From: Lytechinus pictus
Lineage: Eukaryota
DNA length: 64,000 nt
Assembly (NCBI RefSeq): GCF_037042905.1
Contig: NC_087245.1
Span: 43,214,001-43,278,000, forward strand
Reading direction: 5' to 3'
A model generated the notes under the pieces. It saw nothing but the letters and a program-made list of their open reading frames with translations, was not told the origin of the DNA and searched no databases. Both the position numbers and the translations under genes were made by a program. Positions 6,102 through 63,941 of the stretch are shown in pieces (the stretch's first letter is position 1; the number at the start of each line of letters is the position of its first letter).

Positions 6102-6565
6102 ATGATATACATACATGTACATCCTATGAACACCAAAGGAGCAAGAAAGGTAGCAGAAACGGCCGCCCTCCGTTTTCTGAAAGAACGCATCTTTCTCACT
6201 AGATGCACGATTGATTCGGCTAAGACGGAATACGAAACTTTAAAAGCCGATATCAAAGAGACTATGCAAGCCCAACATAGTACAGACATTCTGAAGGTTA
6301 ATGAAATTATCTACGCAGATGTTTTCGCTAAATGCAAGAAAAGGCAACAGGCTAAATTTGAAAAGTTGATACAACCCAAATCGAAGAAGGTCACCGCCTC
6401 ATTAGCGAATGAGGATAAATGGGTTGTTAATCTATCCTCGAGACAGATCACCTCCACCGAGGAGCAATTGCTTAAGAAAGGCCTCGCCTTTGCCGTGTCG
6501 CCCCCAAAATTGCCCATTACCGAGATTGTAGCTAAGGTTGAAACCGCGGTCAAGTATATTGATCC
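6102..6565 (+). mobile_element. Penelope-like retroelement fragment (region N-terminal to the RT)
   Basis: KWVVNLSSRQITSTEEQLLKKGLAFAVSP matches the VVNLS..L...E..L.KGL.F...P motif typical of Penelope-like ORFs (recognised from memory). The ORF is cut off at the repeat array. Confidence 0.6.
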
Positions 6566-6834
6566 AGTTTGAAAACGATGGTTATGAAATAATGGTTTTA
6601 ACCGTGGTTTTATGAATGTGTAAAAACTGTGGTTATAAAACCATGGTTAAACATTCGTCTTAGCAAGACTGAAAACGACGGTTATACACCATGATTTTAA
6701 CCTTGGTTTTATGATAGTTTTGAAAATGATGGTTATATAAGTTATAACCATGGTTTTAACCGTGGTTTAATGAAAGTGTAAAAACAGTGGTTACAAAACC
6801 ATGGTTAAATTTTCGTTTGAAAACGATGGTTATA
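6565..6834. repeat. CCATGG-rich repeat array, segment 1
   Basis: Recurrent GAAAACGATGGTTAT and AACCATGGTTTT units; continues after element B at 21682. Confidence 0.9.
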
Positions 6835-7228
6835 CACACAGAAAAATTAGGGTACATTTGGGGTACATTTCGAGACATTATCACCCACGCGATCATATTG
6901 TACCCTTGGGGTACTGGTTTTTAGCCAAGAACAGCGGATTCTTGCGAGGGGTATAATTTTGAACCTTTCTTGTGTTAAGATTAGTGTGGTTTCCAGACCC
7001 ATACATAAGCTTTATATTACATAAATATTAGATAATTCAATTCCCAATGTATGATTAACGCATTAAACATGAATATATATTATTTACTATGCGATTTAGC
7101 CCTAAGATAGTGTCATTCTTGGTAGAATATTTAATACTGTTCAAATTAAAATAAGAATCATCCTTAAATGGGTTTTAAAGATAAGACCATGCCGTCAACT
7201 TTGCCGCCAACTTTGAGCCGGCGTGCAA

Positions 7229-7280
7229 GACGCTCGTGCAAGCTGTGAACGGTGGACGCTCGTGCAAGCTGTGAACGGTG
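7229..7280. repeat. Perfect 26-bp tandem duplication in the presumed 5' leader of B
   Basis: GACGCTCGTGCAAGCTGTGAACGGTG x2, upstream of a GTGAGT donor at 7321. Confidence 0.9.
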
Positions 7281-7780
7281 GTGCAATTTCTCTGGAAATC
7301 ATTGTCAAATCCGTCTAAAAGTGAGTATTTTCAGCCGCTTAGCATCTATTCTCTATGTTATCATAATTTTGCCAGAATATTGATCTTTTACCTGCAAATT
7401 TTTCCAGTTATGAGTAGCGAAACTGCCACGAACGGACGCTGGTTAGAAATTCTGACCAGTCCCACTCCTTCATTTTCGTTGTGGTGCGACTAACGTGAAT
7501 CGAGACATAAAAATTACTAATTACCACTTTGACACTTATTTTTCAACTTCTTTAGTTAATTTCCTTCTGGCCAGAGCAGAGAAACTAAAAAATTGAGGAA
7601 TTTAACAATGAGAGTGTGCATTTAACGTGGAATCTAAATAAATATGCTACATTATAACTTACATAGCCATATGGCATATGTGTAACTGCAACTGTTAGTC
7701 ATTGGATGATACATTTTCATGATTTTATAATTTTCGTTCATCAGTTTGTTTATCATTTGACCAGAACGGTAATTATTGTC

Positions 7781-10690
7781 ATGTTTCCTCAACCTTTGCC
7801 ATTTCGATGCCCATTGTGTGGTATCCATTTACGGTCTCTGCAAAGACTGCTAAGTCATGTAGGCGCAGTTCATCAGCATGAGCCCAACCTTTATATCACA
7901 TGCAATATACAGGGTTGCGTACAAGGGTTTAGCAAATTCCATTCCTATCGATCACATATGTATAGAAAGCATCGATTATTCCTTGATCTTGAAGAGAACC
8001 CTAACCACTTAGCCCAGGAAAATGATGAACAGCATTCTGATGATGAACTTGAAAATTATGGTCACGTGCTTGATGATGTGCAACTGGGAGAAAGAGATCG
8101 TAGTTCAAACAGGGAAATGCTACAAAAGCATTTGGCAATGTTTGCTCTTAAAACTAGGGAGAAATATAATCTCCCTAGAGTAGTTGTACAAGATATCATG
8201 AGTAGTGTACGTTCTCTCGTGTCATTTGTAAATGAGTCCCATACAAGTACCACAGATCACGAAGGTCCTTATAATTTTCCTGCATGTCGAGAACCAGAAG
8301 ATGAACTCAATGATCTTACATGTGATACAATCTTTGAGTCGATTGGGTCCGATTTTCTTCTTGAGAAATATTGCAAGGCCAATTTAGGTTTGATAGAATC
8401 TCACGAAAAGATCTTAGGTGAAGAATTGGTAAATGGTCGGCCGGTCAAACATACAATGCAGTATGTTCCCATTTTTGAGGTGTTAAAACAATACCTTGGC
8501 CAGGAAGATGTATGGGCTAGTATGAATGCCAACTTCATGGAGGTTTCTGATCCTGATATATTAGCAGGATATAAAGCTGGGGCTCATTTCCAGAGTAGTG
8601 AATTTTACTCTGCCCATCCACATGCATTGAGGATTGTGTTGTACACTGACGAGTTCGAAATTGTCAACCCATTGGGGGCAAAACGTGGTCAGCAAAAGTT
8701 GCTTGCAGTGTACTACATGGTGGAAAATATTGAGGCTCAATATCGATCAACCTTGTCAAATATCCATCTTGCTCTCCTTGTTAGGAACAAAATCGCTCAA
8801 AAATATGGATATGAAGGGATACTTAAACCCCTCATCACTGACCTAAAGATTCTGGAAAAAGATGGCATCTTCATAAATGTGAATGGCACAACGCATCACC
8901 GCCTTGGTTCTGTCATTGCAATGTGTGGTGACAATCTCTCGGCTCATGCTGTTGGTGGGTTTTCCAGTTGTTTCAATTCTGGGCGTATTTGTAGGCACTG
9001 TATGGCATTGAAACCTGAGATCTGCACAAAATTTGAAGAAAGTCAGTTTGTTCTCCGAACCACAGAAGTACATGCATATCATTTAAATGCCATTAAAGCA
9101 GACAGTCACAATTGTTCTGTTTATGGTGTTTATCGTCCATGTGTTCTCGATGAATTGCGATATTTTGATGTTACAAAGTGTTTACCCCCTGATCCCATGC
9201 ATGATCTGCTTGAGGGAGTTGTCCATCATGTGATAAGAGTTGTCCTCAAAGAGTTATTAGCGCGTTTTCGCCCAGCGTCGTACGACGTAGAACGTAAGGG
9301 TCGTGTGCAAAAATCGCCAACTTCCATGGAAACAGAGGCCCGAGCGTTCTTGAGCTCAAATCACGGACGGTTCTTCCGCAATTTAGCGGGCGTCCGCATT
9401 AGAACGTAGGATTTGTCAACAGCCGTCAACAGCCAATCAGATCGCTTGTAGAGCGAGCAAGCTGAGCCGATCAAATCGAGCGCGCGCCGACAGCCAGTTC
9501 ATAGAGCGCGGGCGCGGGATTTTCCCTAGTAGTGGTGACGTCATGCAGTCTACGTACTTCCGGTCGATCCGGCCGCGTTCAGCGATTTGCGAAACTGCTT
9601 ACAAGCGAGAGTTGAGCGCGACGGACGCACGAACCAAGAGATCGTTCTACGTCGTAGATAGCGTCGTACGACGCTGGGCGAAAACGCGCTAGTGACACAA
9701 CGATGTTTGAATTTTTCCAGTAGTAAACTGCAGAAGAAAATGGAAGAATTTAAATATGGTAGTAATGATGCAATGAGCAAGCCCGTTGTAATTCAGGCCA
9801 AAAATGTGAAGCACAATGAGCCCAATATAGTTGGTTCTGCGTCACAGAAACTATGCTTGTTCAGGCTATTGCCTTTTTTGATAGGTGAATTTGTGCCTGA
9901 AGATGCAGATATATGGGAGCTTTATCTTTCTTGCAGAGAGATTGTGGATATTTGCCTCTCACCCATTGTAAAGAAATCATGGCTTCCATATCTGCAGCAA
10001 GAGGTAATCGATCTAAGTGAATTGTTTGCAAAATATTCACAAGATCAATATCCTTGCAAACTTCATTATTTGATCCATTACCACAGACATCTTTCAGACT
10101 TTGGACCTCTTAGAAACTTTTGGTGTATGAGATTTGAATCTAAGCACCAATATTTCAAGAATCTATCGTCTGTGGTCCGTAACTTTAGAGATGTTGCCTT
10201 AACCCTGACAACACGTCATCAGTCTCTCCAATGTTGGCAAATGAATGCAGGGTCATTTTTCCAGCAGCAAGAGAGTGCTCTTAGTAATTGCAGACAGATT
10301 TCAGTGCTTAAACTGCCTCGTGCTCTCCAAAGAGTTTTGACTGAAATGAGTCTTGTCCACGAAGGCAATTTGTGGAAGACAAATTCTGTGCAAGTAAATT
10401 CCATGACTTATCAAGATGATGATGTTATCATCATAGATATAAAGCATGAAGAAATTCCTGTCTTTGGGAAGGTTAAGCATATTTTACAATGTGACACACA
10501 TTGGTATATATGCATCAAGGAGTTTGATACGTGCAGATTTAACAGGCATCTTCATGCATATGAAATTGGTGTAACAGAAAGATGGAGTGTGATGAAGGCA
10601 GGACCAAGAAGGGATTTCCAGAGTCTTAGTCTTTATGAGATAGATGACAAGTGCATGGTATCGTTGAAACATAGACCTTTGTTGTTGTAA
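7781..10690 (+). CDS. EnSpm/CACTA transposase of B (825 aa when restored), interrupted by a 430-bp MITE
   Basis: Two C2H2 fingers, YTDEFEIVNPLG, GDNL, CRHC, PPDPMHDLLEGV and KLHYLIHY...FGPLRNFWCMRFESKH. 7781-9259 joined to 9692-10690 is in frame (KELL|VTQR). Confidence 0.92.
9260..9689. mobile_element. GC-rich MITE inserted in the B transposase
   Basis: 28-bp perfect TIR GCGCGTTTTCGCCCAGCGTCGTACGACG, with TA on both sides (9258-9259, 9690-9691). Superfamily uncertain. Confidence 0.92.
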
Positions 10691-11543
10691 GGAAAATTGA
10701 ATCTTGCCCTCTATTAACCTATTTTCAGCATTTCATGCAATTATTGCTATTTTTGTGGTGTGTTCAGAAAACAGTAGAGGTCCTGTGCTGTCCAGTTTCT
10801 TTTTAGGTTTCTAGTAGTTTTTTATTTCTCTCCTTCTTTATATACTTTTTCGTTTATCTCATACATGTGTCATTTGTCTCTGACAAAGGTTCTGCTAGGA
10901 CTGACTGCTCAGGCTCTTTTACTTCGTGTTTTTCCAATTAACATATATTGTATTTTGTGGTTCTATAATGGCTACAATTTAAATGCTCATCTCACCTAGC
11001 AAAGAAGATTTTTTTTTAATAGTCTAGATACTGAGTCTGAATAAGTATCTAACATATTTTCCAATGCGTTCAAGTAGTTTTGCTACTCTCTAAATGGTAA
11101 ATTAACAATTGAATGAATAAATTAATGTATATATAGAGAGAGATGTAGGTTGATTATACAGCCACTATCATGGCAATTTTGGGGTGAGAGTGCATCGACC
11201 CAGCTTGTCAGTTGGTCATCTCTAAGCCGGCTAAAAGGTATGTATAATCCTCTCTGAATGTCAGTGTGATACGATTTTGATGTTGATAGTGTGAAATTCA
11301 CAAATTTGTCATGAATAGTAGAGGTGTCGTGGTCTAGATGTGAATTCCTGGGACTTTCTGGCAAGAAATTTTACTACATCTGCCACTTTCACCCAGGTGC
11401 TATTGTTCATGGCTACTCTATATAATAAGTGCAGTACAACAAACAATAATACTTCTCAGATATTTTGCGCACTGTTTTGCTTCAACAATACACCCAATCA
11501 AGACAATCAATGACATATCGTGCATATTTCTTTCTTCCTTTAG

Positions 11544-14500
11544 TGTTGCAGTATCATGTTTCTTGTGGGACTTCAAAGAAGCAGGTTATCATTGAAGAAA
11601 ATGCCACAATTGATGACTTGAGGGTGAAGATTGCCTCCAAATTTAACATGAGGAGACCCGACAGCCTGCAGGTCTTCAATAAAGACTTTGGTGACTGGCT
11701 GGACCTGGAAGAAGAGGATGAACTTCCTCCAACAATGTCAAGGGTGAAGGTTTTGGATGACCCAAACGAGGACACAGAAGACAAAGCGAGTTCTGATATC
11801 CATGAAGACAGGGAGGTCCCATCAAGACAGTAGGTTATTTTTTGTCTGTTCTGTATGCATATTATGTTGACGTTATCCGCATATATTGTTCATCTTTTCC
11901 ATTTTAATGCGTGAGGCAAACGCCTGGAGTAGTAAATGTCATAGACTTACATTTTTCCTCATGTTTCTTTTAATCGGATTGTAATTTATTCACTCAATGA
12001 TTTATTTCTATTATTGTAAATCAATTAAGCATTTGGCTGATTTTTATATACACGAGATGTTGTTATTGCCATTAATATTATTAGTATTATTATCATTATA
12101 ATTGTTATCATCATCTTTTTGCGCAGGACTTCAGTCGCTTCCACATGTCCTCAGACGCTGACATCTGAAGGAGCAAGGAGCAGCTTTTTTGTAAATTTTA
12201 AAGTGCCTGAAATGCCCCACGATGTGCAAAAACTCTTAAATGACAACAACAAGGCTGTTCTGGAAAGGAAGTGGAGGAGAAAAATTGTGTCGCATCTGTA
12301 TGACAACATGGTTCAAGTGGCAGTGTAAGTTTGCGTTAAAATTTGTCTTTCTCCTCAGTGAGTTTTCATTATTAGGACATATATTGGCTCAATCAGCGCC
12401 CGAACCCTACAATAATCTATAATAAACCATATAAAGCTTATTATAACCCTACAATATTAAGTCTGTATTGAACAAAATACATATTGCTTGGTTTGTGTAC
12501 ATATTCAAACATTTGTATCATTATTATACATGTATACGGGCAATTCCGTAAACTGATCAACCTTTTGTACGTCCGACCTCACTTTTCTGCTATTTTACTT
12601 TGCTATTTCACTATTTGGGCCATCATCATGAAAGACCATTACACCGAGTTTGCAAATCAGATATGAATGATGGAAAGTTAATTTATGAAGGCCCTGTATG
12701 CAGGGGATCAGCTGTACATAATTTATAGATTTACCAATTTTTTTGTATTGCTTTGATGTACCCTCAAAAATTTAATCGAATCTTGTGCATGTACATTATT
12801 ATGTTTGGTTCCTCTCCTCTCTCCCTCTTTCTCTCTCTTTCTTTCTATCTGTGTGTGTGTTTCTGTCTTCTCTTCTTTCTTTCTCTCTCTCTCTCCCTCT
12901 CTCTCTCTTTAACTACAGGTACCCTCATTCATGGGAGTACAATGCTGTGTGCAGTGCACTGATTAACAAGCACCCGATTTTGAAGGATCGAACCATAAAT
13001 GGTTCGGGATATGTAAGTTTTACATGCGCGCATGTGTGTGAGAATAATGATAATGATTCTTGAGATGATAACATATAATAAGTAGTAAATTGTAGTGAAC
13101 AAATATGCAATATTGAAACATTTTTTGTTCTTTTTTTTTCCTTACACATCTTGTGTTTCCTTACACATCTTGTGTTTGCGAGTCTGATACCACTTCAAAA
13201 TGGAGGAAAAATACCATGAAAAAGATCGATTTTGCACAGATTTGACTGGAACTTGATTGTGTATTATGTGTCAGAATATATAACTTGTTAAATACCTTTT
13301 CAATAATTCCACTTCATTACGTTAAAGCCCAAGTATAGTTTTGGTAAGGATTAAGAAATGTGAATTTTTGGGATATCTACCATGACATATAGTTTTTATA
13401 CACATTTTAAGACCATAGCATTTTTTCTACGAGCTAATTCTTTTGGAAATTTGAATTTGACCGTTAAATCGTATTTAGCGCCCTCTATTGGTTGTAACAA
13501 TAATTTGCTTCTTATCGGGCATATACAAAGTTATTTCCAAGACTTGATTAAAGCATGATAAAAAGGAATACACAAAGAATAAATTCTGAAATTTTCATCC
13601 AATTCTATGCATGAGAAGTTGTCCTTTATCAAGAAAGAAAATATTGAATTCGCATCGGGGGACACGACGCTGAAATATTTTGCACATTTTAGGTTATAAC
13701 TTTTCCAAAACTTGTTCATTTTTTGCACAATCTTTTGTACAACATGTTCATGATATCATGTTTCATTTTATACCGATTTGAAGTCAAAATTTGGTGATAA
13801 AAAATTTTGCTTTTACCAAAACTGTACTTGGCCTTTAACCCTAAATAGGCTGGGCTATTTTGAGAGTTCTCAGAGCCGGGGGGGGGGGGGGGGGGGCCTC
13901 CCAGGCCCCCCCCCCCCCTTCTGTTCTCGGCCGTCGATCGCGCTATCGCCGCGAAAATTTGCACGCGAGTAGAGCATCATGTAAACTACAAATTACCATC
14001 GTCAGATTTTCGAAAAAATACACCGTTTATTTTTAATTAATTAATTATGCTAATTTATGCATAAAAAGGCATTTTGTTCTCTAAATCACAAAATACTAGT
14101 GATAGCAAACTAATTTTTGGTCTAAGTATTCCTGGTATCATATCTAACAATTCCACATAAAAAAAATTGCACTGACAAATTGAATTTCTTTTTTTTTTTT
14201 TTTTTCAATTTCTTATGTATTTCATTGTTTTTTCGACCTTTTTTTTCTATTGTTTTTTGGGCACAATTTATTACAAATATTTTTTCAAGTATAATTATGC
14301 TAAAATGAATTGATTTCTGCCACTGAAAGCAAAAACATGAATTATTATGTGAATTAATTGAAAAAACACAATTTGCATTGACTTTGTACACAAAAACACG
14401 TTTTGGAGCAGTTTTGAGGCTGACATGCGTGTATAAAATGTTACGTAATTTCGTAACGGTAAGTCCGATTATCATGAAAACGGTTTTAAAAGTTGCGGGA

Positions 14501-17500
14501 AACTTGAAAGAAAAAAGTCAGCGAGCCGCGTTATCAGAAATTTTCGTGCAGCGAAACGATCGCGAAATCCGTCGGCCCCCGGCCTAGTTAGGGTTAATGC
14601 AGGGTTAATTATTAAAATAACCAGGTTTTTTTTTTTAATATGCTGTTATGCTTCATGTCTCACATTATTTTTGCATTGTAGGATACAATAAAAGAGTCGC
14701 TGAGGACAAAGTTTAAACACGAGAGAGGGATTCGAACACCATCAACTGATGTAGCCAGGAGGAGGGAGTTGTATGGCCGCAATGGCCCCAGAAAGCGTGC
14801 TGAGGACAACGTGGAAAAGGCCCCATCTCCTGTTAAAAGGAAGAAGCGGGATAGCATTGAGGTAAAGCAACCGTATACTTTTTTAGAGTTATCTGTAGCA
14901 TCTATCTGGCATTTCAATGTTATGACTTATTGTGAAAGAAGCCATCTATTAGATTGTTGGTTGTAATACATGTGTCGATTTATATATAGAAACAAATGAA
15001 ATTTCAATCTTGTGTGCCGATGATTTTTCATGTATTCAAGAACTCATGTGACGTTTTGTTTAAAATTAATGTGCTCTTTTTTTTTTTGTTTAGACCTCAC
15101 ATGGGGGAGAAGACGAAGCCAGCATCCAAAGACACATCGCGTCATTAAAAGATCTGGCATCCAAGAGGGGCGCAGACCCGTCAATTATTCAGGACAAAAT
15201 GAAGCGGACGCGAAGTCATAGACTTTGTTTTATTCAAGCCAATGCTTTGCAGGATGTTCTGAATGAATATCCGATACTGAGGTTTGAAAAACAGGTTAGT
15301 ACTAAATGTATTTCTTTCTTTGATAACATTAAAACTACTACGTACACATCAATCTCTTCGCGCACCAAATCAGATCTTAACGCAACATTGATTATTATTT
15401 ACTATTAAAATTGTACATGTACAAAAAAATATTGAAACTGCAGAGTTATAAATATCGGCTCCTATTTTTCGGAATAAATGGATGAAAATGCAATAGATTA
15501 TAGATACTGCACATCTTCGACCAAGTTAACTACTTTATTCATGTGTGATGTTCGGTTTTCATTTAAGAAATATGGAGGATATTTTGATGAAACTTAATTA
15601 ATGAAAATTAATCAGCGCGGATTAATCAAATGAAATCCATGAATTTGATTGGATAAAAAGCATCGTCTCTTACTCTTTAATAAATATTAGTGTCGGAGAA
15701 TGAGGCTTGTATTGTTGCTGCAACAAGCCTCATGAAATGCCCTCCAGGCGCTAGTTATAAGTGCGCTATTGATTACCTTCTATGAACATTGGCTCATTTT
15801 GTTTAATTTGTGTCCATCCATTCTTTTTAGCTAATACGTGAGCTTCAAAATACGTATGGGGCAAAGGAAATAGCAGCCGCTATTGCCGAATCGGTTACAG
15901 CTAGTGGAGAAGTGATTCTCCGAGAAGGATTGAAGGTGCCAGCAGCACAAGAAGTGATCGAGCAATATCAGGACAAAGTTGATGGTGCGACTACAGACAA
16001 GCAGAAAAAAGGTATTTTGTGCCTCATACCTCCAATTTATTTTATGGTGTAGAGGATAGTACCAAAAGCTATGGAATTATTTGCGATATTTACATTTATT
16101 TCGGCTTACATATAAAAAGGAATTGGTACTGCTAAAGTCACTGTCGTCCATGCCTTCAAAATCAGTTAATTGCATGAGGAGGAACATAACTATCCCACAT
16201 TAGTTGTCATAGTCTTTGTTTATTATTCTTATCATAATTTATTATGGTGCTCAATTTCCCTGTCATCACCCTTTCAGAGAAGAGAAGAAAAAATGGACGT
16301 GTTTCCTTGACAATTAACATGGATATTTCGTTATCTTTCCTTCATGATTATGATCTAGAAGAAATAGCTTCCAAAAGCGTAAAACTGAAATACAATGTAT
16401 TTACATGTATCTATTTTGTTTGGTTTTGTTTTAGATTTACTGGTGGCATTGTCATGCTTGCTGTTTCCTTTGATATTTGGGGAAAAGGACTCCATGTACA
16501 CTATAAACAAGGTAACATTCAGATTCCGCATTTAGTATCTACTTTCCTTGGGATTGATTAAATTTTGCATTTGTCGGCTTTATCTAATTGTCATTCCAGG
16601 TCATTCCAGGCTATCATTTTTTTATGTTAACAATTCTAATTTAAGATAGACACCAATTGCAGGGACTGCAGAACCGGGGGCGGGGGGAGGGGGGGGGTGG
16701 GTGCTCGGGGCTGCAGCCACCACACTTTTTAAAAATTGCGTGCAAGCCTATGGCAATGTGTAAAAATCGTTATCCACAGGCCCCGCACTCTCAGCCCCCC
16801 CCCCACTCTTCAAAAACGTTCCATGGTGCCTGAAATGTACCATCAATAATACAGTTTAACCTCTTTATAAAGATCACTGATGCATGTATATTAAAGTAAT
16901 GTTTTTGGTCAGAGTTCTTTGCATTGATTTGTTTTCCCTCCAAGGGAATAATGAATATCGAGAATCTTTTTTAACCCTATTTTAACTGGGCTTTTTGAGA
17001 CCAAGTTTATACTTCAGATCTCGGCCGTGGATCGCGCAATCGCCGCAAAATTTTGCACACGGATAGAGCAAAGTGTAAACTACAAGACTGTATGGATTGA
17101 TTTTCCGAAAATTCCTAATTTCTATTTTTAAATAATTAATTATGCAAATTTATGCATGAAATCACACTTTCTGCTCTATTTCCCTCAATAAAGCACCTAT
17201 AAGGCTAATTTTTGGTGTGAATATTCTTTATAATATCCCTCATGACACAACTTGAAAAAAATTTGGTATGACAATTTATTTCTTATGTTTTTTATTGATT
17301 TATGAATTTCTTATGTATTTCTTTGTTTTTTAGACCTTGTGTTTTCTATTGTTTTTTCTATGAAATTTATTGCAGGACATTTTTGAAGCATTTTTGTGCT
17401 GAAATAAATTAGTTTCAGCCCATCAAACAAAAAATAACTACATCTTTATGGATTCTGACTGAAATCACAATTTACATTGACTTTGCACACAAAATCACGT

Positions 17501-18054
17501 TTTTGAGCCATTTTCGGTCTGACATGCATGTACAAAAAGTGGTGCGGCAACATAACCACATACCCGATTTTTGCGAAAACAGTCTTAAAAGTTGCGCAAG
17601 ACGTTAAAGAAAAAAGTCAGCGAGTCTCGTGGTGAAAAAATTTTGCGCGGCTGAGTGATCGCGAAATTTGTCGAGGGGGGGGGTCAAATTGACCCCCCCC
17701 CCCCCTCCCCAGTTGGAATAGGGTTAAAGATTTATATGTTTTTATATTTCCGATTGGCTTTCTCTTTCTCAATTTTGTCAGGAACCCCAGAGCCCTACTC
17801 CTACCCTAGTGATATCAGGGAACCCCTTTGAATGTCGTGATTTAGCCATATTCATGGACGGGATAGAAGTTTGTCGAGCATCAGATCTCACATCCGGGTT
17901 TGTTGCAACATTCTCAAGTTTTTATGTGTTTGGGGTCCAGTACCCACAACGTGGAAAGAGGACCCTACAGCTATACCAGAAATTTTTTGCAGGACTGGAT
18001 GATGGAAGTCCCCTACCACCCAGAGTCCAGCGATTTCTTAACAGCCTTGTTTAG
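11544..18054 (+). CDS. Spliced accessory gene of B: ubiquitin/PB1-like N-terminal module plus SAMD3-like body, about 496 aa, start exon unresolved
   Basis: Exons 11544-11829, 12127-12324, 12919-13012, 14682-14861, 15094-15294, 15831-16011, 16435-16511 and 17782-18054. All are GT-AG, phase compatible (2,2,0,0,0,1,0) and stop-free. Motifs include VPEMPHDV, YPHSWEYNAVCSALINKHPIL, EYPIL and FYVFGVQYP. Confidence 0.85.
12812..12910. repeat. (CT)n/(GT)n microsatellite before an acceptor site
   Basis: Read directly from the sequence. Confidence 0.9.
13326..13834. mobile_element. Kolobok-like non-autonomous element
   Basis: TTAA|AGCCCAAGTATAGTTTTGGTAA...TTACCAAAACTGTACTTGGCCT|TTAA: TTAA TSD and purine-purine terminus. 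Confidence 0.75.
13839..14593. mobile_element. piggyBac-like non-autonomous element
   Basis: TTAA|CCCTAAATAGGCTGGG...CCCGGCCTAGTTAGGG|TTAA. Confidence 0.85.
16975..17723. mobile_element. piggyBac-like non-autonomous element related to 13839-14593
   Basis: TTAA|CCCTATTTTAACTGGG...CCCAGTTGGAATAGGG|TTAA. Shares internal CTCGGCCGTnGATCGCGCnATCGCCGC and GAAAAAAGTCAGCGAG. Confidence 0.85.
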
Positions 18055-18159
18055 ACTGATTTATTTCTGGTTGGAAATTCCGCCTTAAATTTCTATTATT
18101 TTGCCCTAAAATTAAAGACTGTTCTGTGTACATGAGAAGATTTACACTCTCTTGCTACA

Positions 18160-19740
18160 TTTGCTGAGATGAGGCAAAGTTTTGTATCAACTCAAACATT
18201 TTAATTTATTACGATTGCTTCATTTATTTTATGTGCTGAAATGAGGCCAAGTTTTGTTTCCTGTATCAACATGATCAACTCAAACTTTTTTTATTACACC
18301 TGCTTCATTTATTTTATGTGCTGCAATGAGGCAAAGTTTTGTATCAACTCAAACATTTTAATTTATTACACCTGCTTAATTTATTTTATGTGCTGCAATG
18401 AGGCAAAGTTTTGTATCAACTCAAACATTTTAATTTATTACACTTGCTACATTAATGTGCTGAAATGAGGCAAAGTTTTGTATCAACTCAAACATTTTAA
18501 TTTATTACACTTGCTACATTAATGTGCTGAAATGAGGTCAAGTTTTGTTTTAAAGGGGTACTAGCCCCTGACATTATCGTGCTCTCATTGAATAAAGAAA
18601 AATCAGATGAACAAACTGTAAAAATTTGATAAAAATCAGACAACTCGCTCAAAAGTTATGAATTTTCAAAGTCACCGAGATTTGACGATCACTGCCGCTC
18701 ATGGGGATCAGTGCGATCGGCAAAACCGACGGAATCTGTGACGTCATGTCGGACAACTCCTCATTCACTTTGTACATAGAATATTTAAAAATTGATCAAT
18801 GTCAAATTTAGAGTGAGGTTGCAGCATGAATCTTTTCAAAATACAAGCAAAAACAATGTAGAAATGCTATACCGCAACCAAAAAATGGTATTTTGTTGAC
18901 TTTTCCGAGAAAAAGGAGAAAATGTGAAGTTTGGTGTACAGAGTGAATGAGGAGTTGTCCGACGTGACGTCACAGATTCCGTCGAATTTGCCGATCGCAC
19001 GGATGCCCATGAGCGGCAGTGATCGTCAAATCTCTGTGACTTTGAAAATTCATAACCTTTGAACGGGTTGTCCGATTTTGCCCAAATTTTCAGTTTGTTC
19101 ATCTGGATTTTCTTCATATCCTGAGGTGAGGATAATTCCAGGGGTTGGTTTCCCTTTAATTTATTACATTTGCTACATTTATTTCATGTTTTGTGTGCTG
19201 AAATGAGGCTAAGTTTTGTTTCCTACATCAACTCAAACGTTTTAATTTATTATATGTGCTGAAATGAGGCCAAGTTTTGTTTCCTCTATCAACTCAAACA
19301 TTTTAATTTATTACGATTGCTTCATTTATTTTATGTGCTGAAATGAGGCCAAGTTTTGTTTCCTGTATCAACTCAAACATTTTAATTTATTACACCTCCT
19401 TCATTTATTTTATGTGCTGCAATGAGGCAAAGTTTTTTATCAACTCAAACATTTTAATTCTTTACGATTGATTCATTTATTTTATGTGCTGAAATGAGGC
19501 CAAGTTTTGTTTCCTGTATCAACTCAAACATTTTAATTTATTACACCTCCTTCATTTATTTTATGTGCTGCAATGAGGCAAAGTTTTTTATCAACTCAAA
19601 CATTTTAATTTTTTACGATTGATTCATTTATTTTATGTGCTGAAATGAAGTCAAGTTTTTTATCCTATATCAACTCAAAAGTATTAATTTGTTACATTTG
19701 CTACATTTTAATGTGCTGAAACAAGGCAAAGTTTTGTTGC
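18160..19740. repeat. Tandem array of 60-80 bp units in the 3' UTR region of B
   Basis: Unit about TGTGCTGAAATGAGGCCAAGTTTTGT(TTCCTG)TATCAACTCAAACATTTTAATTTATTAC..., more than 10 copies, interrupted at 18554-19155. Confidence 0.93.
18554..19155. mobile_element. Kolobok-like palindromic MITE
   Basis: TTAA|AGGGGTACTAGCCCCTG...CAGGGGTTGGTTTCCCT|TTAA, with long internal inverted arms (about 18625-18780 versus 18930-19090). Confidence 0.8.
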
Positions 19741-19789
19741 AAACGTCAATATAACTATTTAGTGGGTTCTTAAAATCGTTACAATATGA

Positions 19790-20491
19790 GTTTCTGGTCA
19801 CATGGTCAAGGTCAAAGGTTACCAGAGGTCATCAAACTTTGGTATGTCAAGCCAAAAACATCAAAAACTTAACTTGGAGGTTATATTTTAGAAATGTCAA
19901 CGTAGGTTTAAAATTTTTTTGTCTCTTTCCATGAAACTTTGTAATTAGGGTCATTAAGCATCACCAATCGTTCCGTATGCATTAGTAGTGTGGGTGGAGT
20001 CATTGTTGCCATGGTAACCATGGTTATATTGAAAAAAAATTAAGATTGTCTAGTAAGCATTCTACAGACCAAAATTTTCATCCAATCTTATTCAAATTTG
20101 GTGTGGACGTGTATTATGGCAAGTGGAAGTAAGCTGTCGATTCTTGGATATGGGCAGGGTCATTGTTGCCATGGTAACAATTTTTATAAAGAAATAATGA
20201 AGATTTCAGGGTGAGCACTCTACAGGCCAGATGTTTCATCTGCTCATATTCTAATTTGGTGTTGATGTGTAATGTTAAGAAGCCTATTGAATTAGGGTGT
20301 GGGCATAATCATTATTGCCATGGTAATCATGGTTTTTCAGATTTCTTTTAGTCATTGTTTTTGTCCAGTCACATTCAAATTTGGTGTTGGGACTGTATTA
20401 TGGTAGGAGTATCATGTGATATTTCCTGATTTCTTTGTAAAAGTGCTGCTGCCTGAAGAAGGCAAAACCACCAGAGGCACTCCACTTGTTT
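19790..20491 (+). mobile_element. Degenerate Helentron-associated-like (HINE/Tsp-type) element, 3' part
   Basis: GGTCAAGGTCAAAGG and TTGCCATGGTAAC repeats. The end CCAGAGGCACTCCACTTGTT matches the reverse complement of the end of the element at 61362. Confidence 0.5.
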
Positions 20492-20974
20492 TTTCTTAGA
20501 TTGTACTTTTTAATATAAACTTTTGTCCATATATTTCCTCCAAAAACAGATACCAAAACTTTTAAGATACCGATGCGATTATTTTGTACCTTTTCAATGA
20601 ATGAGAAAATATTTCTTTCTCATCATTTCTCGCAATAGGTGACACTTGGTTCAGCTGGTTTGTTATTTACATCACAATGTATAAGCTTATAGATATTCCA
20701 CACGTCAGATTGCCTTGTATGTCCACAAAGAGTGTGAGGCTACATCCTTTTTGCTTTACATAATTATTATTGCTCGTCTGAAGGCATGTTTACAGATTTT
20801 GATTAAGTCTGTGCCAAGAAATGGTGTTTAATATGTATGATGTATTAAATGTGTTGAACTCCAAATGTATATTCACTACTCTCCTTTCTAGTACATGTAC
20901 TGTAATAGCTCCTCATTGGCATATACATATACATGTGTCACAATTAGGACCTATTGCAGCTCATTTGAAAATAT

Positions 20975-21115
20975 TATTATAACTATTATTATTATTATTG
21001 TTGTTGTTGTTGTTTGTTAGTTGGTTTGTTTTTATTGTGTGTGTGTGTGTTGTGCGTGTTAGCGTGTGTGTGTGCTGTGGGTGGGTAGGTGGGTGTGTAC
21101 GTGTGTGGTTGTGTG
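20975..21115. repeat. (TTA)n/(TTG)n/(GT)n microsatellite tract
   Basis: Read directly from the sequence. Confidence 0.9.
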
Positions 21116-21119
21116 TATT

Positions 21120-21681
21120 ATTTGTACCAGCAAGGGAATGAAATTGTACCAACGGGGTGAAAAATTGCACCCCAAACATATAAAATTGAACCAAAAAGGG
21201 TATAAAATCGTACCACAAAGGGTATGAAAATGTACCTAAGGGGTCTGAAATTTGAACCCTACATGGAGGACATTGTACCAAAAGGGTGTAAAATTGTACA
21301 AAAGGGGTATAAAAATATACCGTAAAGGGTATAACATTGTCTCAAAAAGGGTGCAAAATTGTACCACATGGGTAAAAACTTGTACCAAATGGGGTATAAA
21401 ATTATACCAAAGGGGTATTATATTGCACCGGAAATGAATGAAAAAGTGTATAAATTGTACGAAAAGGGTAAAGATTTCTACCTAAGGGGTATACAATTTT
21501 ACCAAAAGGGGTACAAATTTGTACCCCAGGAGTACCCGGGGGTACAATATTGTACCCCATCATGGGGTACAAACTTGTACCCCAACTTTGGGGTACAACT
21601 TTGAACCCTATAGGGTGCAGCCGGTGTTGCATTGGATTGTACCCCTAGGGGTACAAATTTGTACCCTAATTTCTCTGTGTG
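21120..21681. repeat. 3' subterminal repeats of B
   Basis: Many (A)ATTGTACC / GGGTACAA / GGGTATAA units in both orientations, leading to the TIR. Confidence 0.9.
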
Positions 21682-22281
21682 TACACCAGGATTTGAGCCA
21701 TGGTTTTATTTTAGTTTGAAAACGATGGTCATGAAATAATGTTTTTTTTTTAACGTGTTAACCATGTAAACCATAGTTAAACATTCGTCTTAGCAAGATT
21801 GAAAACGACGGTTATACACCATGATTTTAACCATGGTTTTATGATAGTTTGAAAATGATGGTTATATAACCATGGTTTTAACCGTGGTTTAATGAAAGTG
21901 TAAAAACAGTGGTTACAAAACCATGAACCAAGGTTGAAAACGATGGTTATACACCAGGATTTGAGCCATGGTTTTATTAGTTTTAAAACGATGGTTATGA
22001 AATAATGGTTTTAACTGTGGTTTAATGAATGTGTGAAAACCGTGGTTATAAAAACCAAGGTTAAAGATTCGTCTTGGCAAGGTTGAAAACGATGGTTATA
22101 CGCCATGATTTTAACCATGGTTTTATGATAGTGTGAAAACGATTGTTATGAAACAAAGATTTTATCCGTAGTTTTATAGTAGTGAAGAGACGGCAGTTAT
22201 AAAACCATGATTTTCAACAGGGGGGGGGGGCACCATGGTTGTATGAGAGCATAAGAACAGTGGTTATAAAACCATGGTTTA
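21682..22281. repeat. CCATGG-rich repeat array, segment 2
   Basis: Same units as 6565-6834. Confidence 0.92.
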
Positions 22282-30879: not shown

Positions 30880-33800
30880 ATGGATGACTTTGTTAAAGAG
30901 AAACTAGTGATGTGGGGGCTGGAAAGATTTCTGGAAAATTTTGAAGGTAAGCTTTTGTAATCATAACTGTTCAACTGTCGCAAAATTTGATATTGTTGCT
31001 TGAAGAATTTCTCAGACTGAGCAAGTTTAATTGAGTTTAACACTGCATTTGGTATGCAAAACAGTGTTAAATATGCACAGTAAATGCATGCCTAAGCCTT
31101 CCGTATTTGAATGTACGCAGCACGCAAGACATTTACTGCCGTTCAATCAAAGTCCGAGAATAACGTTGGGCGTTCATGGTTAGTAACAAATCACTTTACA
31201 CACTTTTTTATCCGTTCGAGAAATTCCTCAATCAACAATAAAATAATATTCCATCTATAATGTGAGCCTGTCTGGCTATGGATTTGTTTGGCCATGCTTT
31301 GACCTACGGAGCTGTTTGGCTTGTAGGGGGTTAGCAAGCTTGAAGGTGTGTGATGTCAAGCTTCCAAATTTTGCACTCATTTTTACTTGGAATATTTATA
31401 ATGAGCGATCAACTTTAAATTGTTGTTCAAAATAAAATGTTTTGCCGACAGACTTACCCAACTTTCTGGGCAGTATGTAACCAGAACAATTTTGTCCCGC
31501 CTTATGTTTGTTGTTGAACCTATGACAAATGTGTACAAAATAGTTTTGAATTAAAAGTAGGAGTGGGCTTTATACAGGGGTCAAAACACTTTTTTGGTAA
31601 TTTAATTTTTACAACAGTGTTTTTTTTGTGGGAAATGACTTATCTCAATATAATATGGAAAAATTTTGGACTATGTGTTTACCAAAAAGGTGCGCCATGC
31701 CCTCTTATGTCAGCTCATAGCTATTGAAATTGTGGGAAGGAGCAAAAAGTTACTTAATTTCACTCATTTTCAGTGAATATTTCTGTACCTTTGGTGTCAA
31801 ATTAGATGCAAATGAAGTCAAAATACAAGATTTTGAAAGTTTTGTAAAAATCAGACATTTCGTTTTTGTGAAATGCGCCATCATAGGTTAAAATGTAGCA
31901 TGAGGGTGCTTTTCATTCTTTCAAAATTTTTTTGAATTTTTTGCTTATCAAAGGATACCAGAATAAAGATAATACTAAGTTTGACATCCTCAAGAAGTTT
32001 GAGCTTTCTATTGCAAATGGTTTATCTGTAGCGACTATTAGAGTATCCGATTAGAATCGATATGTTTCCCATCAAATTACACAGAGGAAAATTTTGGTCG
32101 GTAAAGAGCGTGCATTATTTACAGGGGAAGGGGCAAGGAGAAACTTATGGGGGAGGGGTGTCATATGATTTTCAGTTGGTCAAATATTAAAGGGCATTTT
32201 GGGGAATTTGGGTCCTTGCATGCTTAGAACACAAAAGGGAAGATGCAATGCATTAATATGTGTGAGATAAACATAGTGTGCCTCAGGTTTTTTGCGCCAT
32301 TATCACTTATGCTAATATTGCAGAAAGATTTTGCTTACATGCGCACTAGAAAGCCATCTGAAGAACTTTGAATCTTCCTAATTTTCCAAGATTTGTGTAG
32401 GTCATCAGCAAATATTATGTTTCAAACTTCAAAAGTGTTTCTTGAATTTGATACCAATTAAATTCTACCAAATTCAGCTACATTGTATGTATTATGAAGA
32501 TTCCCCAACTACTGCTCCATGAGATCGAAGCGAGAACTTCGACTCAAGAACCACTAATTTTTTTTCTTTCTAATTACACCCCTCATGAAAACCTGGTAAA
32601 AACACACATGCCCACAATGCCTGTAATCTGGATCATGAATAACACGGAATATGGTCATATGGTTTTATTTGTAACAGAACAAGAGATTGACCAAGAAACC
32701 CTCCTTCTCCTTGATGATCAAGCTGTGAAAGCGGATTTGATAAAGCCACTTGGTCCAAGATCAAAGCTGCTCCAAAGGATAAAGGAATTGAAGGTACTAT
32801 TATTTTGACTTTTACTCTGTAAAGGAGTATATCGGAAACACTATTCTAATGGAATATAATTGTACTTGTCCCAAGTGTGGTGAACTTATAGACGGTGGCA
32901 GTAAAGCAATTTTATGGCATTTACAGAATCGACATGGTGTTATTAAGGGCCGTATTTTTACAGAAAGTATAGTATGTATGCAGGAAGGGTGCCAACGAAC
33001 ATTCTCAGGCAGAACGGAACAGTTCAAGCGCCACTTGATGAGTCATGCTTGTACTAGAGAACCACATGGCCATGTCCCACCACGTCCACATGGTAATTTT
33101 GATAATGCTGCAGATGTTGACGCAGGCAATGATTTTGCTGAAAACATTGATGTTGACATTGACCCAACAGAAGGGGATGCTGAGATGTGGGATTATTTTG
33201 GTGAGGATGAAATTAAGGAACGGGCTGTCATGCTGGTTGCGGGTCTGCTGGCAAACAGTAGCATTGTCCATACCACAGTTAATGAAGTTGTAGAAAAGTC
33301 AGCTTCTTTAGTTAAAGACACGTGTATGTATATAAAATATAAGGTGCAAAAATTCGGTGCAGAAACTGGACTTGAAGAAAATGATGAATTTCAAAGTCTC
33401 CTATTGGATATAGATATGGTTTCCCACCCGTTTGATAACATGGAAAGTCAATACAAGCAGAAGAAATTCTTCAAGAACAGTGCAGCTTTTATTCAGCCTG
33501 AACAAACTACAATAGGTATTGCATATTATCCATGTAATAACCGTTTAACAGGCAATGTGCAGCAGGTTATGAAGACTATCACATGCCAGTACATTCCAAT
33601 TAAAAAGCTAATAACCTTATTGCTTGAAAAAACAGATCTTATGAAACTAGCTGTAAGCTATGAACCAAGCACAGATGGTATGATGCATGATTTTCAAGAT
33701 GTTTTTTTTTCTGCAGGCAAAGTAGGTTTTTATCTAGCACTCGTACAATCAAACTAATTCTGTATGTAGATGACTTCGAGGTTACCAACCCTCTTAGTCC

Positions 33801-36800: not shown

Positions 36801-39800
36801 TGTTTTTTAGAAAAATATGAAATTAATTTAAAAAAAAGGTATGAAAACAATCCCAGAAACTATCGATTTGGATGATGGTACCACATTTAACGATTGTTGG
36901 CGCAAAATGAAGAAAAAAAATGTACTAGCTAGGCTCCTTGTTTGTTCCTGTTCCTATAGTATCTCTCTCATATTCTAGATGTGAAGGCCCCGGCACATAC
37001 ATGGATCACTTAAAGCATCCACTTATGACCTTTCTTTGTAATCACTTCTGATCTGCAGGACATACGAGCCATCTTGTCCAAACGGAGAGAGGGGGAGGAG
37101 CTTATAAAGGAGATGGAGGAAGGGTGCATCAGCTACAATTCACGAAAATTGATAGTGAACACATTGGTCTCACACCTGATAGAGACATATACAAAGTGGT
37201 AAGCTAAAATCCTATGAGCAGAAAAAGGAAATGCTAGCGTATTTAGATGTGCTATACTATGTGGTAGTTTATTTGCTTATTTGCCTTACCAATTGACTCC
37301 AGTGATCAAATAGATGTCAAGGATTAAAAGTTTGACCACAGACACATACATACCATTTCAAAAGCAATCCCTTTCTCTTGTAGATGACACAAAAGTTAAT
37401 TATCAACTTAACTGGTGCATTGCATACCAGAAATAACCAGACACTTGGTATAAAAATTGTATACATGTAATCTTATCTAACAAATTTCACATAAATTTAT
37501 ATTTTCTTACATTTTCATGGCATAATTGAAACTTGTGTGTTGATATTTAAACACAGCTTTTGAATTGTTTATCACATTTACATAACAAATACATGCAATG
37601 AGCTGACATTACATGTGTATTATGCAGGTGCTTGGAAATAGTTTGGTGTGATACATACACCTTGCACTGTTTGTCTGCTTTATTAAAGGATGGGAGTTTG
37701 GAATTACTAAAATCAGAAAATGGGTGGATCAAAATTTTGCTATATAAAGGATATTCTCAAAGCAGATCACCAATGAAGCAGATTTTCATCAGACTACAAT
37801 TCAAAGCAGGGAATAATTTTGCTTCCCAGATTTGATTAGAAATTTTTGGAGATGGGAAAATATTTAAAACAAATTATGTACAATCCCATGGAAAAAAAAT
37901 TGTGACACAAAGTAAATTTTGTGTAGCAGCCCTGCAAAAAAGCAAAGCAAATTGCGATGCGATACTAGGTAATTTATTCCCTGCAAAGAATTGCATTTAA
38001 TCTCTAATATATATAGCCTTTTAAAACAATATTCTTAAACATTCAATTTTCATTTTTCTAAAGGCCTAAAACAGAGCAAAAATTGGCAATGGCAAAATGC
38101 ATTGTTACCCAGTTTCCTGCGTTGGACAATGATGATCATGATGCTTACGTAAGTTTTGAGTTCATTATGTTAGTTCATGGCTAGATAAATTGTGTGTAAC
38201 ATTGTTACTTGTTAAAGATAGGATCACCCATTTACAAGCCATGTTCATCATTGACTTTAGGCTCATGATGACCAAGATAACCATTGTTTATACTTAATAT
38301 CAGCTAATGCTAAATGGCCCCCTGAACACGTTATCTGCAGCAGGTTATTATTTACTCAACCAGACAAAAGTGGATGAAACTTGATACAACTGAAAGTCTA
38401 AATGCTTAAATCATTGAAAGGTTATTGTCTCAGATTGGGCAAGCCTTTATTAAGGTAAATCTGATTGACCGTACAGTTACCCCAAAGGGTAATACAAATT
38501 CTTATGAACAGTGATCTCTACTTCTAAAATTCAATAGTTTTGTTTTACTTTTTTTACTCTTTTACTTTAAAGTTGACCTGGTTCACTCCAGCAAGCCAAA
38601 ACAAAACAAAAGATTCGTCAGGTTACATTGAAATGCGGCTAAGGAACGTCAGATATCGTGATCCTGCCAGAACGCCAAAAGAAAGCAACAAGAAAGTGCA
38701 AGCAAACTTGCCTAATACAGAAGACCTGGATCTGTCGTCAGGTAAGGAAGAAATATAACAACTGAACATTACATAACCTTAGTTAATTGGTCATGGAGAT
38801 CTAATAGGGGTATTTGTGTCTGCCAGGGAAGCATACACAGAATTAGTCTCAAATAATACCCATGCATGTGTATAGTGTCTTTTAAAAAGTGGGTTTAAGC
38901 AATCATGCTGACACATTCAAGCGACATCTGAATATACAAATTAGTTGCGCTGTAACGAAAATGAGGCAATTTTTCGTATCGATCTGAATGATATTTTGGA
39001 GATCTGCGCCACAAGTTCCTTCCTTTTTTTCTGTACCCTTTTTGTTTGTACAAAATAGTGAAATCAGTCAAGAAATATTCAGGGAAGTGGTTAATTCTTG
39101 ACATCTTAACAAATAAACTCCTAGTGCTTTAAGGCTTCACATGCTTCATCTATTCAGCACCATGCACATTACAGTGTATGAGCCTGGGGGTTGAGCGTGC
39201 ATCATGCAGGCTGCGACGATTTTTTCTTCACTTGATTGCCTGGTCAGGCAAGCTTGGCCTTAAAACTGCTTGACCTTGCTAACAAGCCGCATAACAAAAC
39301 GGTCTGTGCAAAGTTAAAAGTCAGAATATGTTTATGGTTTGTAACTATTTAAGACATGTATAATTTTTGGATGTGTGTAACTTAAGTGATAACATTGATG
39401 CAAGCTAACTTACGATTTGATATTAATCATTGTTGCCCAAACCAAAAAATGATTGCCCAGGGCAATCAGGCAACCAATTGTCACAGCCTGCCCACATGTT
39501 TTATTTCTTGTGTTAATTTTTTACTGTCATCAGGTGAAATGGAACATTTGCTTGTGACTGTCATGACTTATAAATAAACTAAAAAGGCATAATGCATTAA
39601 CTCCCTGAATTTATTTGCATATTTAGATAGAGATGAGGAAGTAGATGCAAAAATAAAGTGGCTTCAGGACCACAAAGAGCCAAGGCAACAAGTTCGATCA
39701 TGGATGAGGGATACCTGTAAGGCGAGGGCAGGCTACATTAGAGACAATAAGGACAAACCTGTGCAAGAGCTTTTACTGTTGTTTCCACGTTTAATTGACA

Positions 39801-42800: not shown

Positions 42801-44069
42801 CAGTTTTAAGGCTGGTGTCAACCTGTCAATGTTTGAAAAGGTTTTGCTCTGTAAATCAGCCTTAATTATTATTCCTAGTAAATGAGTGCGTTTGTAATCC
42901 TAATAGGAATATGAAGCTATCCATTATGAGACAATATATGACAGTGCATTTAGCGGTCAACACAGTGAAGCTACACATTATAACTAAACGCGAACTGCTC
43001 TACTTGGTTTGGAATATTGTATGTTTGAATAGGGGTGTACATTTTTCAATAAAACTGTTGTTTTTTTTTGGGGGGGGGTGTTGACATCATCTTTGGTTTG
43101 AAAATTACTAAAATTTGTGACTGAGAATGAGAATAAAAGATAGAATTAATTGTTTTGCCTGTCATATATCGTCTCATAACGCAGGCGCGGATCCAGGATT
43201 TCTGGGGGGGGGGGGGTTCAAACTGGGAAAATTTTCTGACAATAATTTGAAACCTGACAAGCAAAAAAAAAAGAAAGAAAAAGCTTATCACTCCTTTTTG
43301 AAATCTGACAAGCAAAAAAAAAAGTCTTTATTACTCCTTTTTGAAATCTTACAAGAAAAAAAAAAAGGTTATCACTCCCTTTTTTCCCCCGCTCGCCCCC
43401 CCCCCCCCGTATCCGCGCCTGTCATAATGGATGGACGTACATTACAAATGATAGTACTGTTCCGTAGTGATTACTAAAAAACCTGAGAAATTAATTTTTA
43501 AAAAAATTTCTTTGAAAACTGTTCTGGAGGAAAATATGTTTCAGTGAGAATTGAGTTCAACGAATATTGGCATGTATAGCTGCTGGCTGTATTTCCCTGC
43601 ATTTATCAGAACTTAGTCACAACCCTCACTACATTTGCCTGTTTTACTAAGATTGAAATGATGCACTAAATATTCCCTCCTTCATTTGTGGATGGTTCTG
43701 CTATCTCACTTGTCACCAATTTTATTTGTATTTCATATGCAGATTGGTACAAACATACCAGGCTTCTTGGACCAGAAGACTCAAACACAACCGTTTGTGT
43801 TAATTCAAGGTGAAATTGACAAACCAGAACAAGTGTTTGTTGTTGTGGAAAATAGCACCATCCCATGTACAAGTCTCCTGAAAGGAATTGATATATGCAT
43901 GAAACTAGTGTATATCCTTGATATGGATTATGCTTGGCAATGTCAACATGTTTGGGACTTTCTGCAGAAGAATGTTTACAAACTTGGGCAGGTGAAAGGT
44001 AGAGGTACCTCAGTTCCAGCAGTAACACTTCTCAAAACCTATCTAGAAAACAAGGTAAAAGAAGTTTAG
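30880..44069 (+). CDS. Spliced accessory gene of D: SAM domain, Ser-rich linker and SAMD3-like body, 551 aa, 10 coding exons, intact
   Basis: Exons 30880-30946, 32678-32793, 36106-36390, 37059-37198, 38064-38148, 38573-38741, 39627-39811, 40288-40435, 42119-42252 and 43743-44069. All GT-AG, phases 1,0,0,2,0,1,0,1,0, total 1656 nt with no internal stop. Confidence 0.88.
32849..35364 (+). CDS. EnSpm/CACTA transposase of D (838 aa when restored), one frameshift at about 33701; lies in intron 2 of the accessory gene
   Basis: ORF 32849-33757 joins the frame of 33829-35364 through LILYVDDFEVTNPLSPKSGTHKL. Motifs GDNLG, CRTC, APDIMHDMLEGV, PKHHFMSHY and WVMRFEGKH. Adding one G before the T9 run restores the conserved DG. 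Confidence 0.92.
43182..43421. mobile_element. hAT-like MITE
   Basis: TIR CAGGCGCGGAT / ATCCGCGCCTG, with 8-bp flanks TCATAACG / TCATAATG. Confidence 0.7.
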
Positions 44070-60560: not shown

Positions 60561-60687
60561 AGTAACAGGTCTTTGTAGCAAACTCTTGTGTCAGGATTTG
60601 GCATTGACCTATGTAGTACAGTTTACATGTACATAATATTTGACAGGTAGCAAATGTACATATTGGTGCTCATCAGGTACATATATT

Positions 60688-63600: not shown

Positions 63601-63941
63601 ACCTACAAAGAAAGGTAATTAATGGACCCCCGCAGCTGGTTAGTCAAATCAAAGAACAATGGCCCTACCTCTTTGTTCCGAATTTGTTCACCAAGCATTT
63701 CACAACTCTAACTGGTGTTGACATTGCCTCTACCCTTCTGAAGGCATTCCAAGAGAAAGGACAAACAATTCTTCGTTTCCTAGTGCAGGAAAAATGGGAA
63801 GATGCGAACCATGCCCGTCCTCTCGTGGAAGCTGCGGCTGCAAAAGATGATGCAAACCTGCATGATGTAGCATCTGGTGTGCTGAGAGGGTTGCAGAGCC
63901 TGTTTAAAGAAGGGAATGACTCCCTTTTCCTCATCCATGAT
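60688..63941 (+). CDS. Accessory gene of E (partial): SAM-like exon plus a long SAMD3-like exon
   Basis: Exon 60688-60883 (LVERLLAKGVEEKDDLQFVEEEDITDLVKPIQCRKLLNAW, phase 1) joins exon 62944-63941 (998 nt, open: VARRVVKQWPGSF...GSGHFSLLTKIKWRVEHVNR...YGCINWQP...TYYLQRKVIN...QWPYLF). The ORF track lacks it because the frame has no stop before the window end. Confidence 0.85.
61362..62318 (-). mobile_element. Helentron-associated-like (HINE/Tsp-type) element in an intron of E
   Basis: Subterminal inverted repeat GTCTCACCTGCAT / ATGCAGGTGAGAC, (GCC)n microsatellite, about five 165-190 bp tandem units with TGACCTTTGACCTT, A/T-run ends. Confidence 0.75.

Follow-up and report, generated by a model that had tools for sequence, protein, structure and literature searches.

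A SAMD3-like accessory gene in a two-gene DNA transposon of Lytechinus pictus and its bearing on the origin of vertebrate SAMD3

Background

Plant En/Spm transposons (CACTA; TnpA and TnpD) possess two genes, CAC termini, subterminal repeats, and a many-exon accessory gene located downstream of or around the transposase open reading frame (ORF). The same features recur in element B, which lies within a 64,000-nucleotide stretch of the Lytechinus pictus genome (NC_087245.1, positions 43,214,001 to 43,278,000, forward strand; hereafter the window), but En/Spm makes a 3-bp target site duplication (TSD) and B a 2-bp one (TA), the host of B is an animal, and the binding of element ends in B is inferred. 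The Mirage/Chapaev branch of the CACTA/Mirage/Chapaev (CMC) superfamily resembles B in both its 2-bp TSD and its CAC termini, and a TA duplication agrees better with Mirage-type CMC elements than with strict CACTA. For the passage of an accessory gene from transposon to vertebrate host there is a precedent in another superfamily with another fold (Myb-like): HARBI1 and NAIF1 are a domesticated pair derived from Harbinger/PIF transposons. Beside that pair, SAMD3 is a candidate for domestication.

Vertebrate SAMD3 (human Q8N6K7, mouse Q8C4H2; 520 aa, versus 507 aa for the B accessory protein) consists of a SAM domain followed by a long region, which is the architecture of SAM-bearing transposon copies; the B protein has another N-terminal module instead of SAM, resides in a transposon and belongs to a multi-copy family. 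In the literature found, SAMD3 figures as a normal gene of the host whose expression is in natural killer (NK) and T cells, and it is widely used as an NK/T-cell marker, with no link to transposons and, in the papers found, without addressing the function of its main region; full-text literature searches returned no paper tying SAMD3 to transposons. An earlier note on the window, written from the sequence alone, had proposed that SAMD3 derives from the accessory ORF of animal EnSpm elements. The best overall explanation, to which we assign a probability of about 0.65, is that B is a cut-and-paste DNA transposon with two genes, of the CMC kind, whose ancestral accessory gene has a TnpA-like role, and that SAMD3 was domesticated from such a gene.

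The SAMD3-like gene as part of element B

Element B occupies 14.8 kb (6835-21681), and its accessory gene is located downstream of the transposase, on the same strand, within terminal inverted repeats (TIRs) whose arms are complementary at 21 of 22 bases. An uninterrupted paralogue of the host repeat at 21930-21990 represents the empty site and indicates that TA was duplicated upon insertion. A host orthologue of SAMD3 would be single-copy, syntenic and free of transposon ends; the B gene is instead enclosed by TIRs and a TSD, beside a transposase. Of the 15 sites in the window with the 7-mer GGGTACA or its complement, 13 are at the two ends of B, including a cluster of this type of motif beside the left end (6850-6905).

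The transposase is encoded in two parts (Table 1). Its N-terminal part is 44-58% identical to the corresponding sequence at a locus of the crinoid Anneissia japonica (L003, combined E 5e-124) and 34% identical to residues 7-493 of a Holothuria protein (P0179). Homology halts near 9256 and restarts near 9716, whereas the Anneissia and Siphateles loci (L003, L006) are continuous there; since the 444-bp insertion breaks a frame that is continuous in its homologues, this copy of B is probably unable to make its own transposase, with the accessory gene left intact. Although the insertion is a multiple of three in length and the two ORF halves share a frame, it contains stop codons.

Stop-free stretches and splice signals delimit an accessory gene of eight exons and seven GT..AG introns with matching phases, encoding 507 aa with no internal stop (Table 1). 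The introns fall after residues 106 (phase 2), 172 (phase 2), 204, 264, 331, 391 (phase 1) and 417. All the motifs listed in the earlier note were located on the plus strand, spread from 12197 to 17952 over three alternating frames, so that the order it had given them on one strand was borne out. The sole in-frame ATG is at 11510, and homology to the family begins at about 11543. Pfam detects no SAM domain in exon 1, which sets B apart from the SAMD3 family with its N-terminal SAM; the exon matches the ubiquitin-like Crinkler-N family under the curated cut-off (E 9.6e-4), and an Apostichopus protein (P0068) has an N-terminus collinear with it. Contigs of a run of the same organism (X1, whose RNA label carries a question mark) lack precisely 14862-15093 (intron 4) and 16012-16434 (intron 6), both bounded by GT..AG, and therefore at least two of the predicted junctions are present in processed molecules.

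Introns 3 and 7 hold two copies, about 3.1 kb apart and 75-84% identical, of a repeat with poly-G/poly-C tracts (13830-14600 and 16930-17710). The X1 contig depth over this repeat reaches about 6000, so the repeat is abundant in that library.

The transposase and SAMD3-like gene pair in other genomes

Translated searches with the window transposase were run on fetched loci of other species, and an arrangement with the transposase first and the SAMD3-like exons after it, on one strand, was recovered in Anneissia japonica (L003), Leuciscus chuanchicus (L004) and Siphateles boraxobius (L006). Public gene models preserve the same pairing in fused form: a Holothuria model (P0179) joins the two proteins, as do others from Triplophysa (P0150) and Labeo (P0105) and one more (P0067), and models carrying the name SAMD3 or SAMD3-like have taken in transposase exons or a C2H2 finger in Holothuria (P0179), Misgurnus (P0141, 678 aa) and Anneissia (P0006). 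The fused SAMD3-named models are annotation artefacts of the two-gene element, and such names can now be flagged, the 1329-aa Holothuria "SAMD3" being a transposase plus an accessory protein.

The accessory gene thus belongs to the transposon, as the earlier note had held, on account of its place inside TIRs and a TSD and of the same gene order in a crinoid, a sea cucumber and several cyprinid fishes. Dallia, Phoxinus, Apostichopus and Maylandia encode near-identical proteins at many loci. A maximum-likelihood tree of 36 members, none of them a tetrapod SAMD3, has transposon-linked copies in each major clade, including the clade of fish proteins named SAMD3 (with P0166). An intact, spliced, transposon-resident gene has been kept with its transposase across deuterostome classes, and the comparisons made here show it to have been part of this transposon lineage ancestrally; therefore a large share of the animal genes called SAMD3-like are transposon genes. 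That many SAMD3-like annotations are of this kind had been suggested before, and the near-identical copies at multiple loci and the models fused to transposase support it. Residence in a transposon also explains the erratic copy number of these genes, and a second-gene family is hereby documented for animal CMC transposons.

Relatives of the accessory protein are numerous. Exon 8 alone had 115 phmmer matches at E<=1e-3 among 1.84 billion representatives, and the family includes a Hydra relative. In BLASTP the spliced B protein matched proteins of Diadema (P0003, 4e-88, B 168-506) and Anneissia (P0006, 3e-76, B 131-503), P0053 (1e-40), the Apostichopus protein (P0068, 2e-26 in the pooled set and 4e-28 pairwise, collinear over B 12-506), and Astyanax "SAMD3 isoform X4" (P0161, 3e-37). 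In the Astyanax alignment eight of the nine motifs correspond in order, the ninth (FKVPEMPHDV) standing outside it, directly upstream of its start. Six fish proteins whose clade bears the plain name SAMD3 gave a profile that matched B 145-507 in one stretch (179 bits). B is accordingly similar to SAMD3-annotated proteins over the full length of about 400 aa that defines the family. No Pfam model covers this post-SAM region, and a sequence search of the PDB gave weak matches to SAM only.

Gene structure follows the protein similarity. B shares five of five introns with Diadema, five of five with the amphipod Hyalella, six with Anneissia and four with Siphateles, and a counterpart of exon 7 in size recurs, with 26 aa in both Diadema and Hyalella, 25 aa in Siphateles and about 27 aa in Haplochromis. 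What differs is the N-terminus: SAM domains are present in fish members of the family, and in element D of the window a SAM half-exon (32671-32805, SAM_1 E 8.7e-5) directly precedes the transposase start. Since the N-terminal module is possibly ubiquitin-like in B and SAM in D and many fish copies, it varies between elements, while the long region persists.

Proteins from Carassius (P0090, a cypriniform) and Umbra (P0145, an esociform) show 90% identity across two thirds of their length, and in the tree copies from distant teleost orders stand on very short branches. These two observations suggest horizontal transfer of the element among fishes.

Relationship to vertebrate SAMD3

Protein searches with P0090, P0161 and an alignment of the family (A1) returned only fish, Hydra and echinoderm relatives and no tetrapod SAMD3, and an exhaustive search likewise gave none. 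The link to the reviewed vertebrate proteins was obtained by structure, with the crinoid homologue P0006 modelled in place of B from a 19-sequence alignment (predicted local distance difference test, pLDDT, 68). Among the Swiss-Prot structures searched with Foldseek, mouse and human SAMD3 were the sole significant matches (E 3.2e-12, probability 1.00; next match E 0.16), with 402-407 aligned residues at 21-22% identity. The aligned region is the entire post-SAM part of SAMD3 (113-514) against P0006 60/61-414/416, which is exactly the part of P0006 encoded by its SAMD3-like exons; its transposase-derived first exon and spurious 3' exons fall outside.

The model and the sequence matches of B to SAMD3-named proteins together support the view that the accessory protein of B is homologous to SAMD3 after its SAM domain. 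The earlier note had proposed a collinearity of B with human SAMD3, and alignment beyond the SAM domain was indeed found; the collinearity holds by way of P0006, which joins B 131-503 to SAMD3 113-514, a correspondence that passes through one intermediate and is not a letter-by-letter comparison. Similarity of B to a reviewed SAMD3, over a region of about 400 aa, is in this sense indirect.

A connection between the main region of SAMD3 and a transposon accessory gene would supply a hypothesis for the function of that region, namely end binding or regulation of transposition, and the active elements of fishes and echinoderms would be experimental material for it.

Classification and proposed function

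B has the CAC-starting TIRs and the subterminal repeats of CACTA/EnSpm elements (CMC superfamily), but the comparison with its empty site gives a 2-bp TA where strict CACTA has a 3-bp TSD. None of the Pfam matches of the transposase reaches its curated cut-off (Plavaka, E 0.0018 and 1.8e-4; DUF1258, a nematode family, E 4.8e-4, in the transposase part of P0067), and the tie of B-type transposases to the Mirage/Chapaev branch consists of these sub-threshold DUF1258 and Plavaka matches. The label "EnSpm" given in the earlier note is therefore only loosely supported. On the features taken together, B is a cut-and-paste DNA transposon with two genes, and its kind is best given as CACTA/Mirage/Chapaev.

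By analogy with plant En/Spm, the accessory protein would most likely serve its element as TnpA does. It would bind the element's own subterminal repeats, and the SAM or alternative N-terminal module would self-associate, bringing the ends together or regulating transposition.

Origin of SAMD3: domestication or capture

The origin of the vertebrate host gene SAMD3 by domestication of a SAM-bearing accessory gene is the more parsimonious reading, because the transposon-borne state is both broad and deep in the family and because SAM-bearing copies share the architecture of SAMD3. The opposite direction, by which an early transposon took up a host gene of SAMD3 type and vertebrate SAMD3 is the surviving original, seems improbable. 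SAM is a common host domain, the many conserved introns look like those of a host gene, and transposase-free copies occur in a sea urchin, an amphipod and a cichlid, but the capture must predate all the lineages concerned, namely three echinoderm classes and the teleosts, with transposon-linked copies of constant position and orientation in all major clades and with the host original lost nearly everywhere but in vertebrates; moreover, the N-terminal module varies between elements and the 400-aa region is constant. We regard as less probable still that an old host family was recruited repeatedly by different elements, leaving SAMD3 without a direct transposon ancestor. Fold relatives of the family are spread across many AlphaFold DB clusters, some of them fused to integrase or HECT, and two proteins (P0172 and P0160) carry retroelement domains; such fusions, however, are typical annotation artefacts in repeat-rich DNA, and wherever DNA was read the partner was the same transposase family. 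A resemblance to SAMD3 that is due to chance, or limited to SAM, is refuted, despite the low template modelling score (TM-score) of the P0006 comparison: B has no SAM domain, human SAMD3 is aligned outside SAM (113-511, E 3e-12 versus 0.16 for the next match), and proteins named SAMD3 are matched at E 1e-37 to 1e-88.

Against domestication from a two-gene transposon, the reading preferred here, several observations must be set. No transposase was found within 10 kb at the Diadema (L002), Hyalella (L005) and Haplochromis (L001) loci, so the gene also occurs outside vertebrates as solo or host copies. B is tied to human SAMD3 through one predicted structure of pLDDT 68, whose TM-score against SAMD3 is 0.32, so that the significance comes from the Foldseek local score; the low TM-score is attributed to loose packing of three sub-domains in both predictions. 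The tree and the intron comparison were made without tetrapod SAMD3. Element D has only marginal, collinear matches to the accessory gene (39632-39811 and 43785-43994, profiles, E 0.004-0.1). In the raw stranded RNA runs X13-X15, of each of which about 6% was read, coverage is sparse: exon depth is about 1, in a single orientation that may be sense or antisense, and the introns are touched too. As to function, the accessory protein has no detectable sequence or Pfam similarity to plant TnpA, and no DNA-binding fold was found in the P0006 model (best PDB matches Z<=5, Foldseek E>0.09).

The best matches of the well predicted N-terminal helical domain are three-helix, homeodomain-like DNA binders, at Z<=5 and within noise; DNA binding is not claimed from them. 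Foldseek gave no significant match for this domain or for the whole model.

If the domestication of SAMD3 is true, it would be a second case, after Harbinger/NAIF1, of an accessory transposon gene that became a host gene. A more specific version, put forward tentatively and by analogy, is that SAMD3 is a domesticated TnpA-like CMC accessory protein in which the 400-aa region could be nucleic-acid- or end-binding and SAM could once have paired the ends; a chromatin or DNA-directed role would then be predicted for SAMD3.

Feature coordinates

Table 1. Positions of the features of element B in the window, followed by the corresponding genes or models in other species (numbered in their own sequences).
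Feature	Position	Strand	Remarks
Left TIR	6835-6856	+	Starts CACACAG; 22 nt; preceded by TA at 6833-6834
Transposase, N-terminal part	7706-9256	+	C2H2 finger and catalytic region; ORF continues to 9409 into inserted MITE
Insertion like a miniature inverted-repeat transposable element (MITE)	9253-9696		444 bp, 35-nt inverted ends; splits transposase frame
Transposase, C-terminal part	9692-10690	+	Homology to L003, L004, L006, P0179
Accessory gene, exon 1	11510-11829	+	N-terminal module where SAM would be, possibly ubiquitin-like
Exon 2	12127-12324	+	Holds FKVPEMPHDV and RRKIVSHLYDNM; following intron position common to Anneissia, Hyalella, Siphateles
Exon 3	12919-13012	+	YPHSWEYNAVCSALINKHPIL to GSGY
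Exon 4	14682-14861	+	DTIKESLRTKFKHER, basic linker; junction 14861 to 15094 in X1 contigs
Exon 5	15094-15294	+	MKRTRSHR, EYPIL
Exon 6	15831-16011	+	Junction 16011 to 16435 in X1 contigs
Exon 7	16435-16511	+	26 aa; SCLLFPLIFGE
Exon 8	17782-18054	+	TPTLVISGNPF, FYVFGVQYPQR, stop codon
Motif FKVPEMPHDV	12197-12226	+	
Motif RRKIVSHLYDNM	12275-12310	+	
Motif YPHSWEYNAVCSALINKHPIL	12920-12982	+	
Motif GSGY	13001-13012	+	Spliced onto DTIKESLRTKFKHER
Motif DTIKESLRTKFKHER	14682-14726	+	
Motif MKRTRSHR	15199-15222	+	
Motif EYPIL	15265-15279	+	
Motif SCLLFPLIFGE	16452-16484	+	
Motif TPTLVISGNPF	17797-17829	+	
Motif FYVFGVQYPQR	17920-17952	+	
3' subterminal tandem repeats	18133-19740		72-151-bp units; repeat families D1-D3, inverted repeat I1
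Right subterminal short repeats	21120-21659		GGGTACA / TGTACCC type; repeat families D4, D5, D12
Right TIR	21660-21681	-	Ends CTGTGTG; followed by TA at 21682-21683
Anneissia japonica L003, transposase	8528-11299		
Anneissia japonica L003, accessory gene	13713-18466		
Leuciscus chuanchicus L004			Transposase then SAMD3-like exons, one strand
Siphateles boraxobius L006	from 9950 (gene)		Single 808-residue transposase match, E 3e-121
Holothuria P0179, transposase	residues 7-779		Fused model, 1329 aa
Holothuria P0179, SAMD3-like part	residues 971-1327		Fused model, 1329 aa

Other features of the window

A search of the rest of the window with the B exons (tblastn) found no copy in element D or element E at E<1. 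With profiles, E contains a clear, divergent member of the family, a single long exon (63003-63938, E 1e-13 and 4e-23), cut off at the window edge. The module ahead of this exon (60685-60888) is not SAM by Pfam, its best match (E 0.039) being to an unrelated family.

The 3' subterminal repeats of B include a 156-nt inverted pair (18621-19090), 91% complementary, with 158 nt between its arms. B itself is nested in another repeat (6535-6832 and 21684-21990), whose arms carry AACCATGGTT-type motifs and in which 6638-6725 is 94% identical to 21768-21855.

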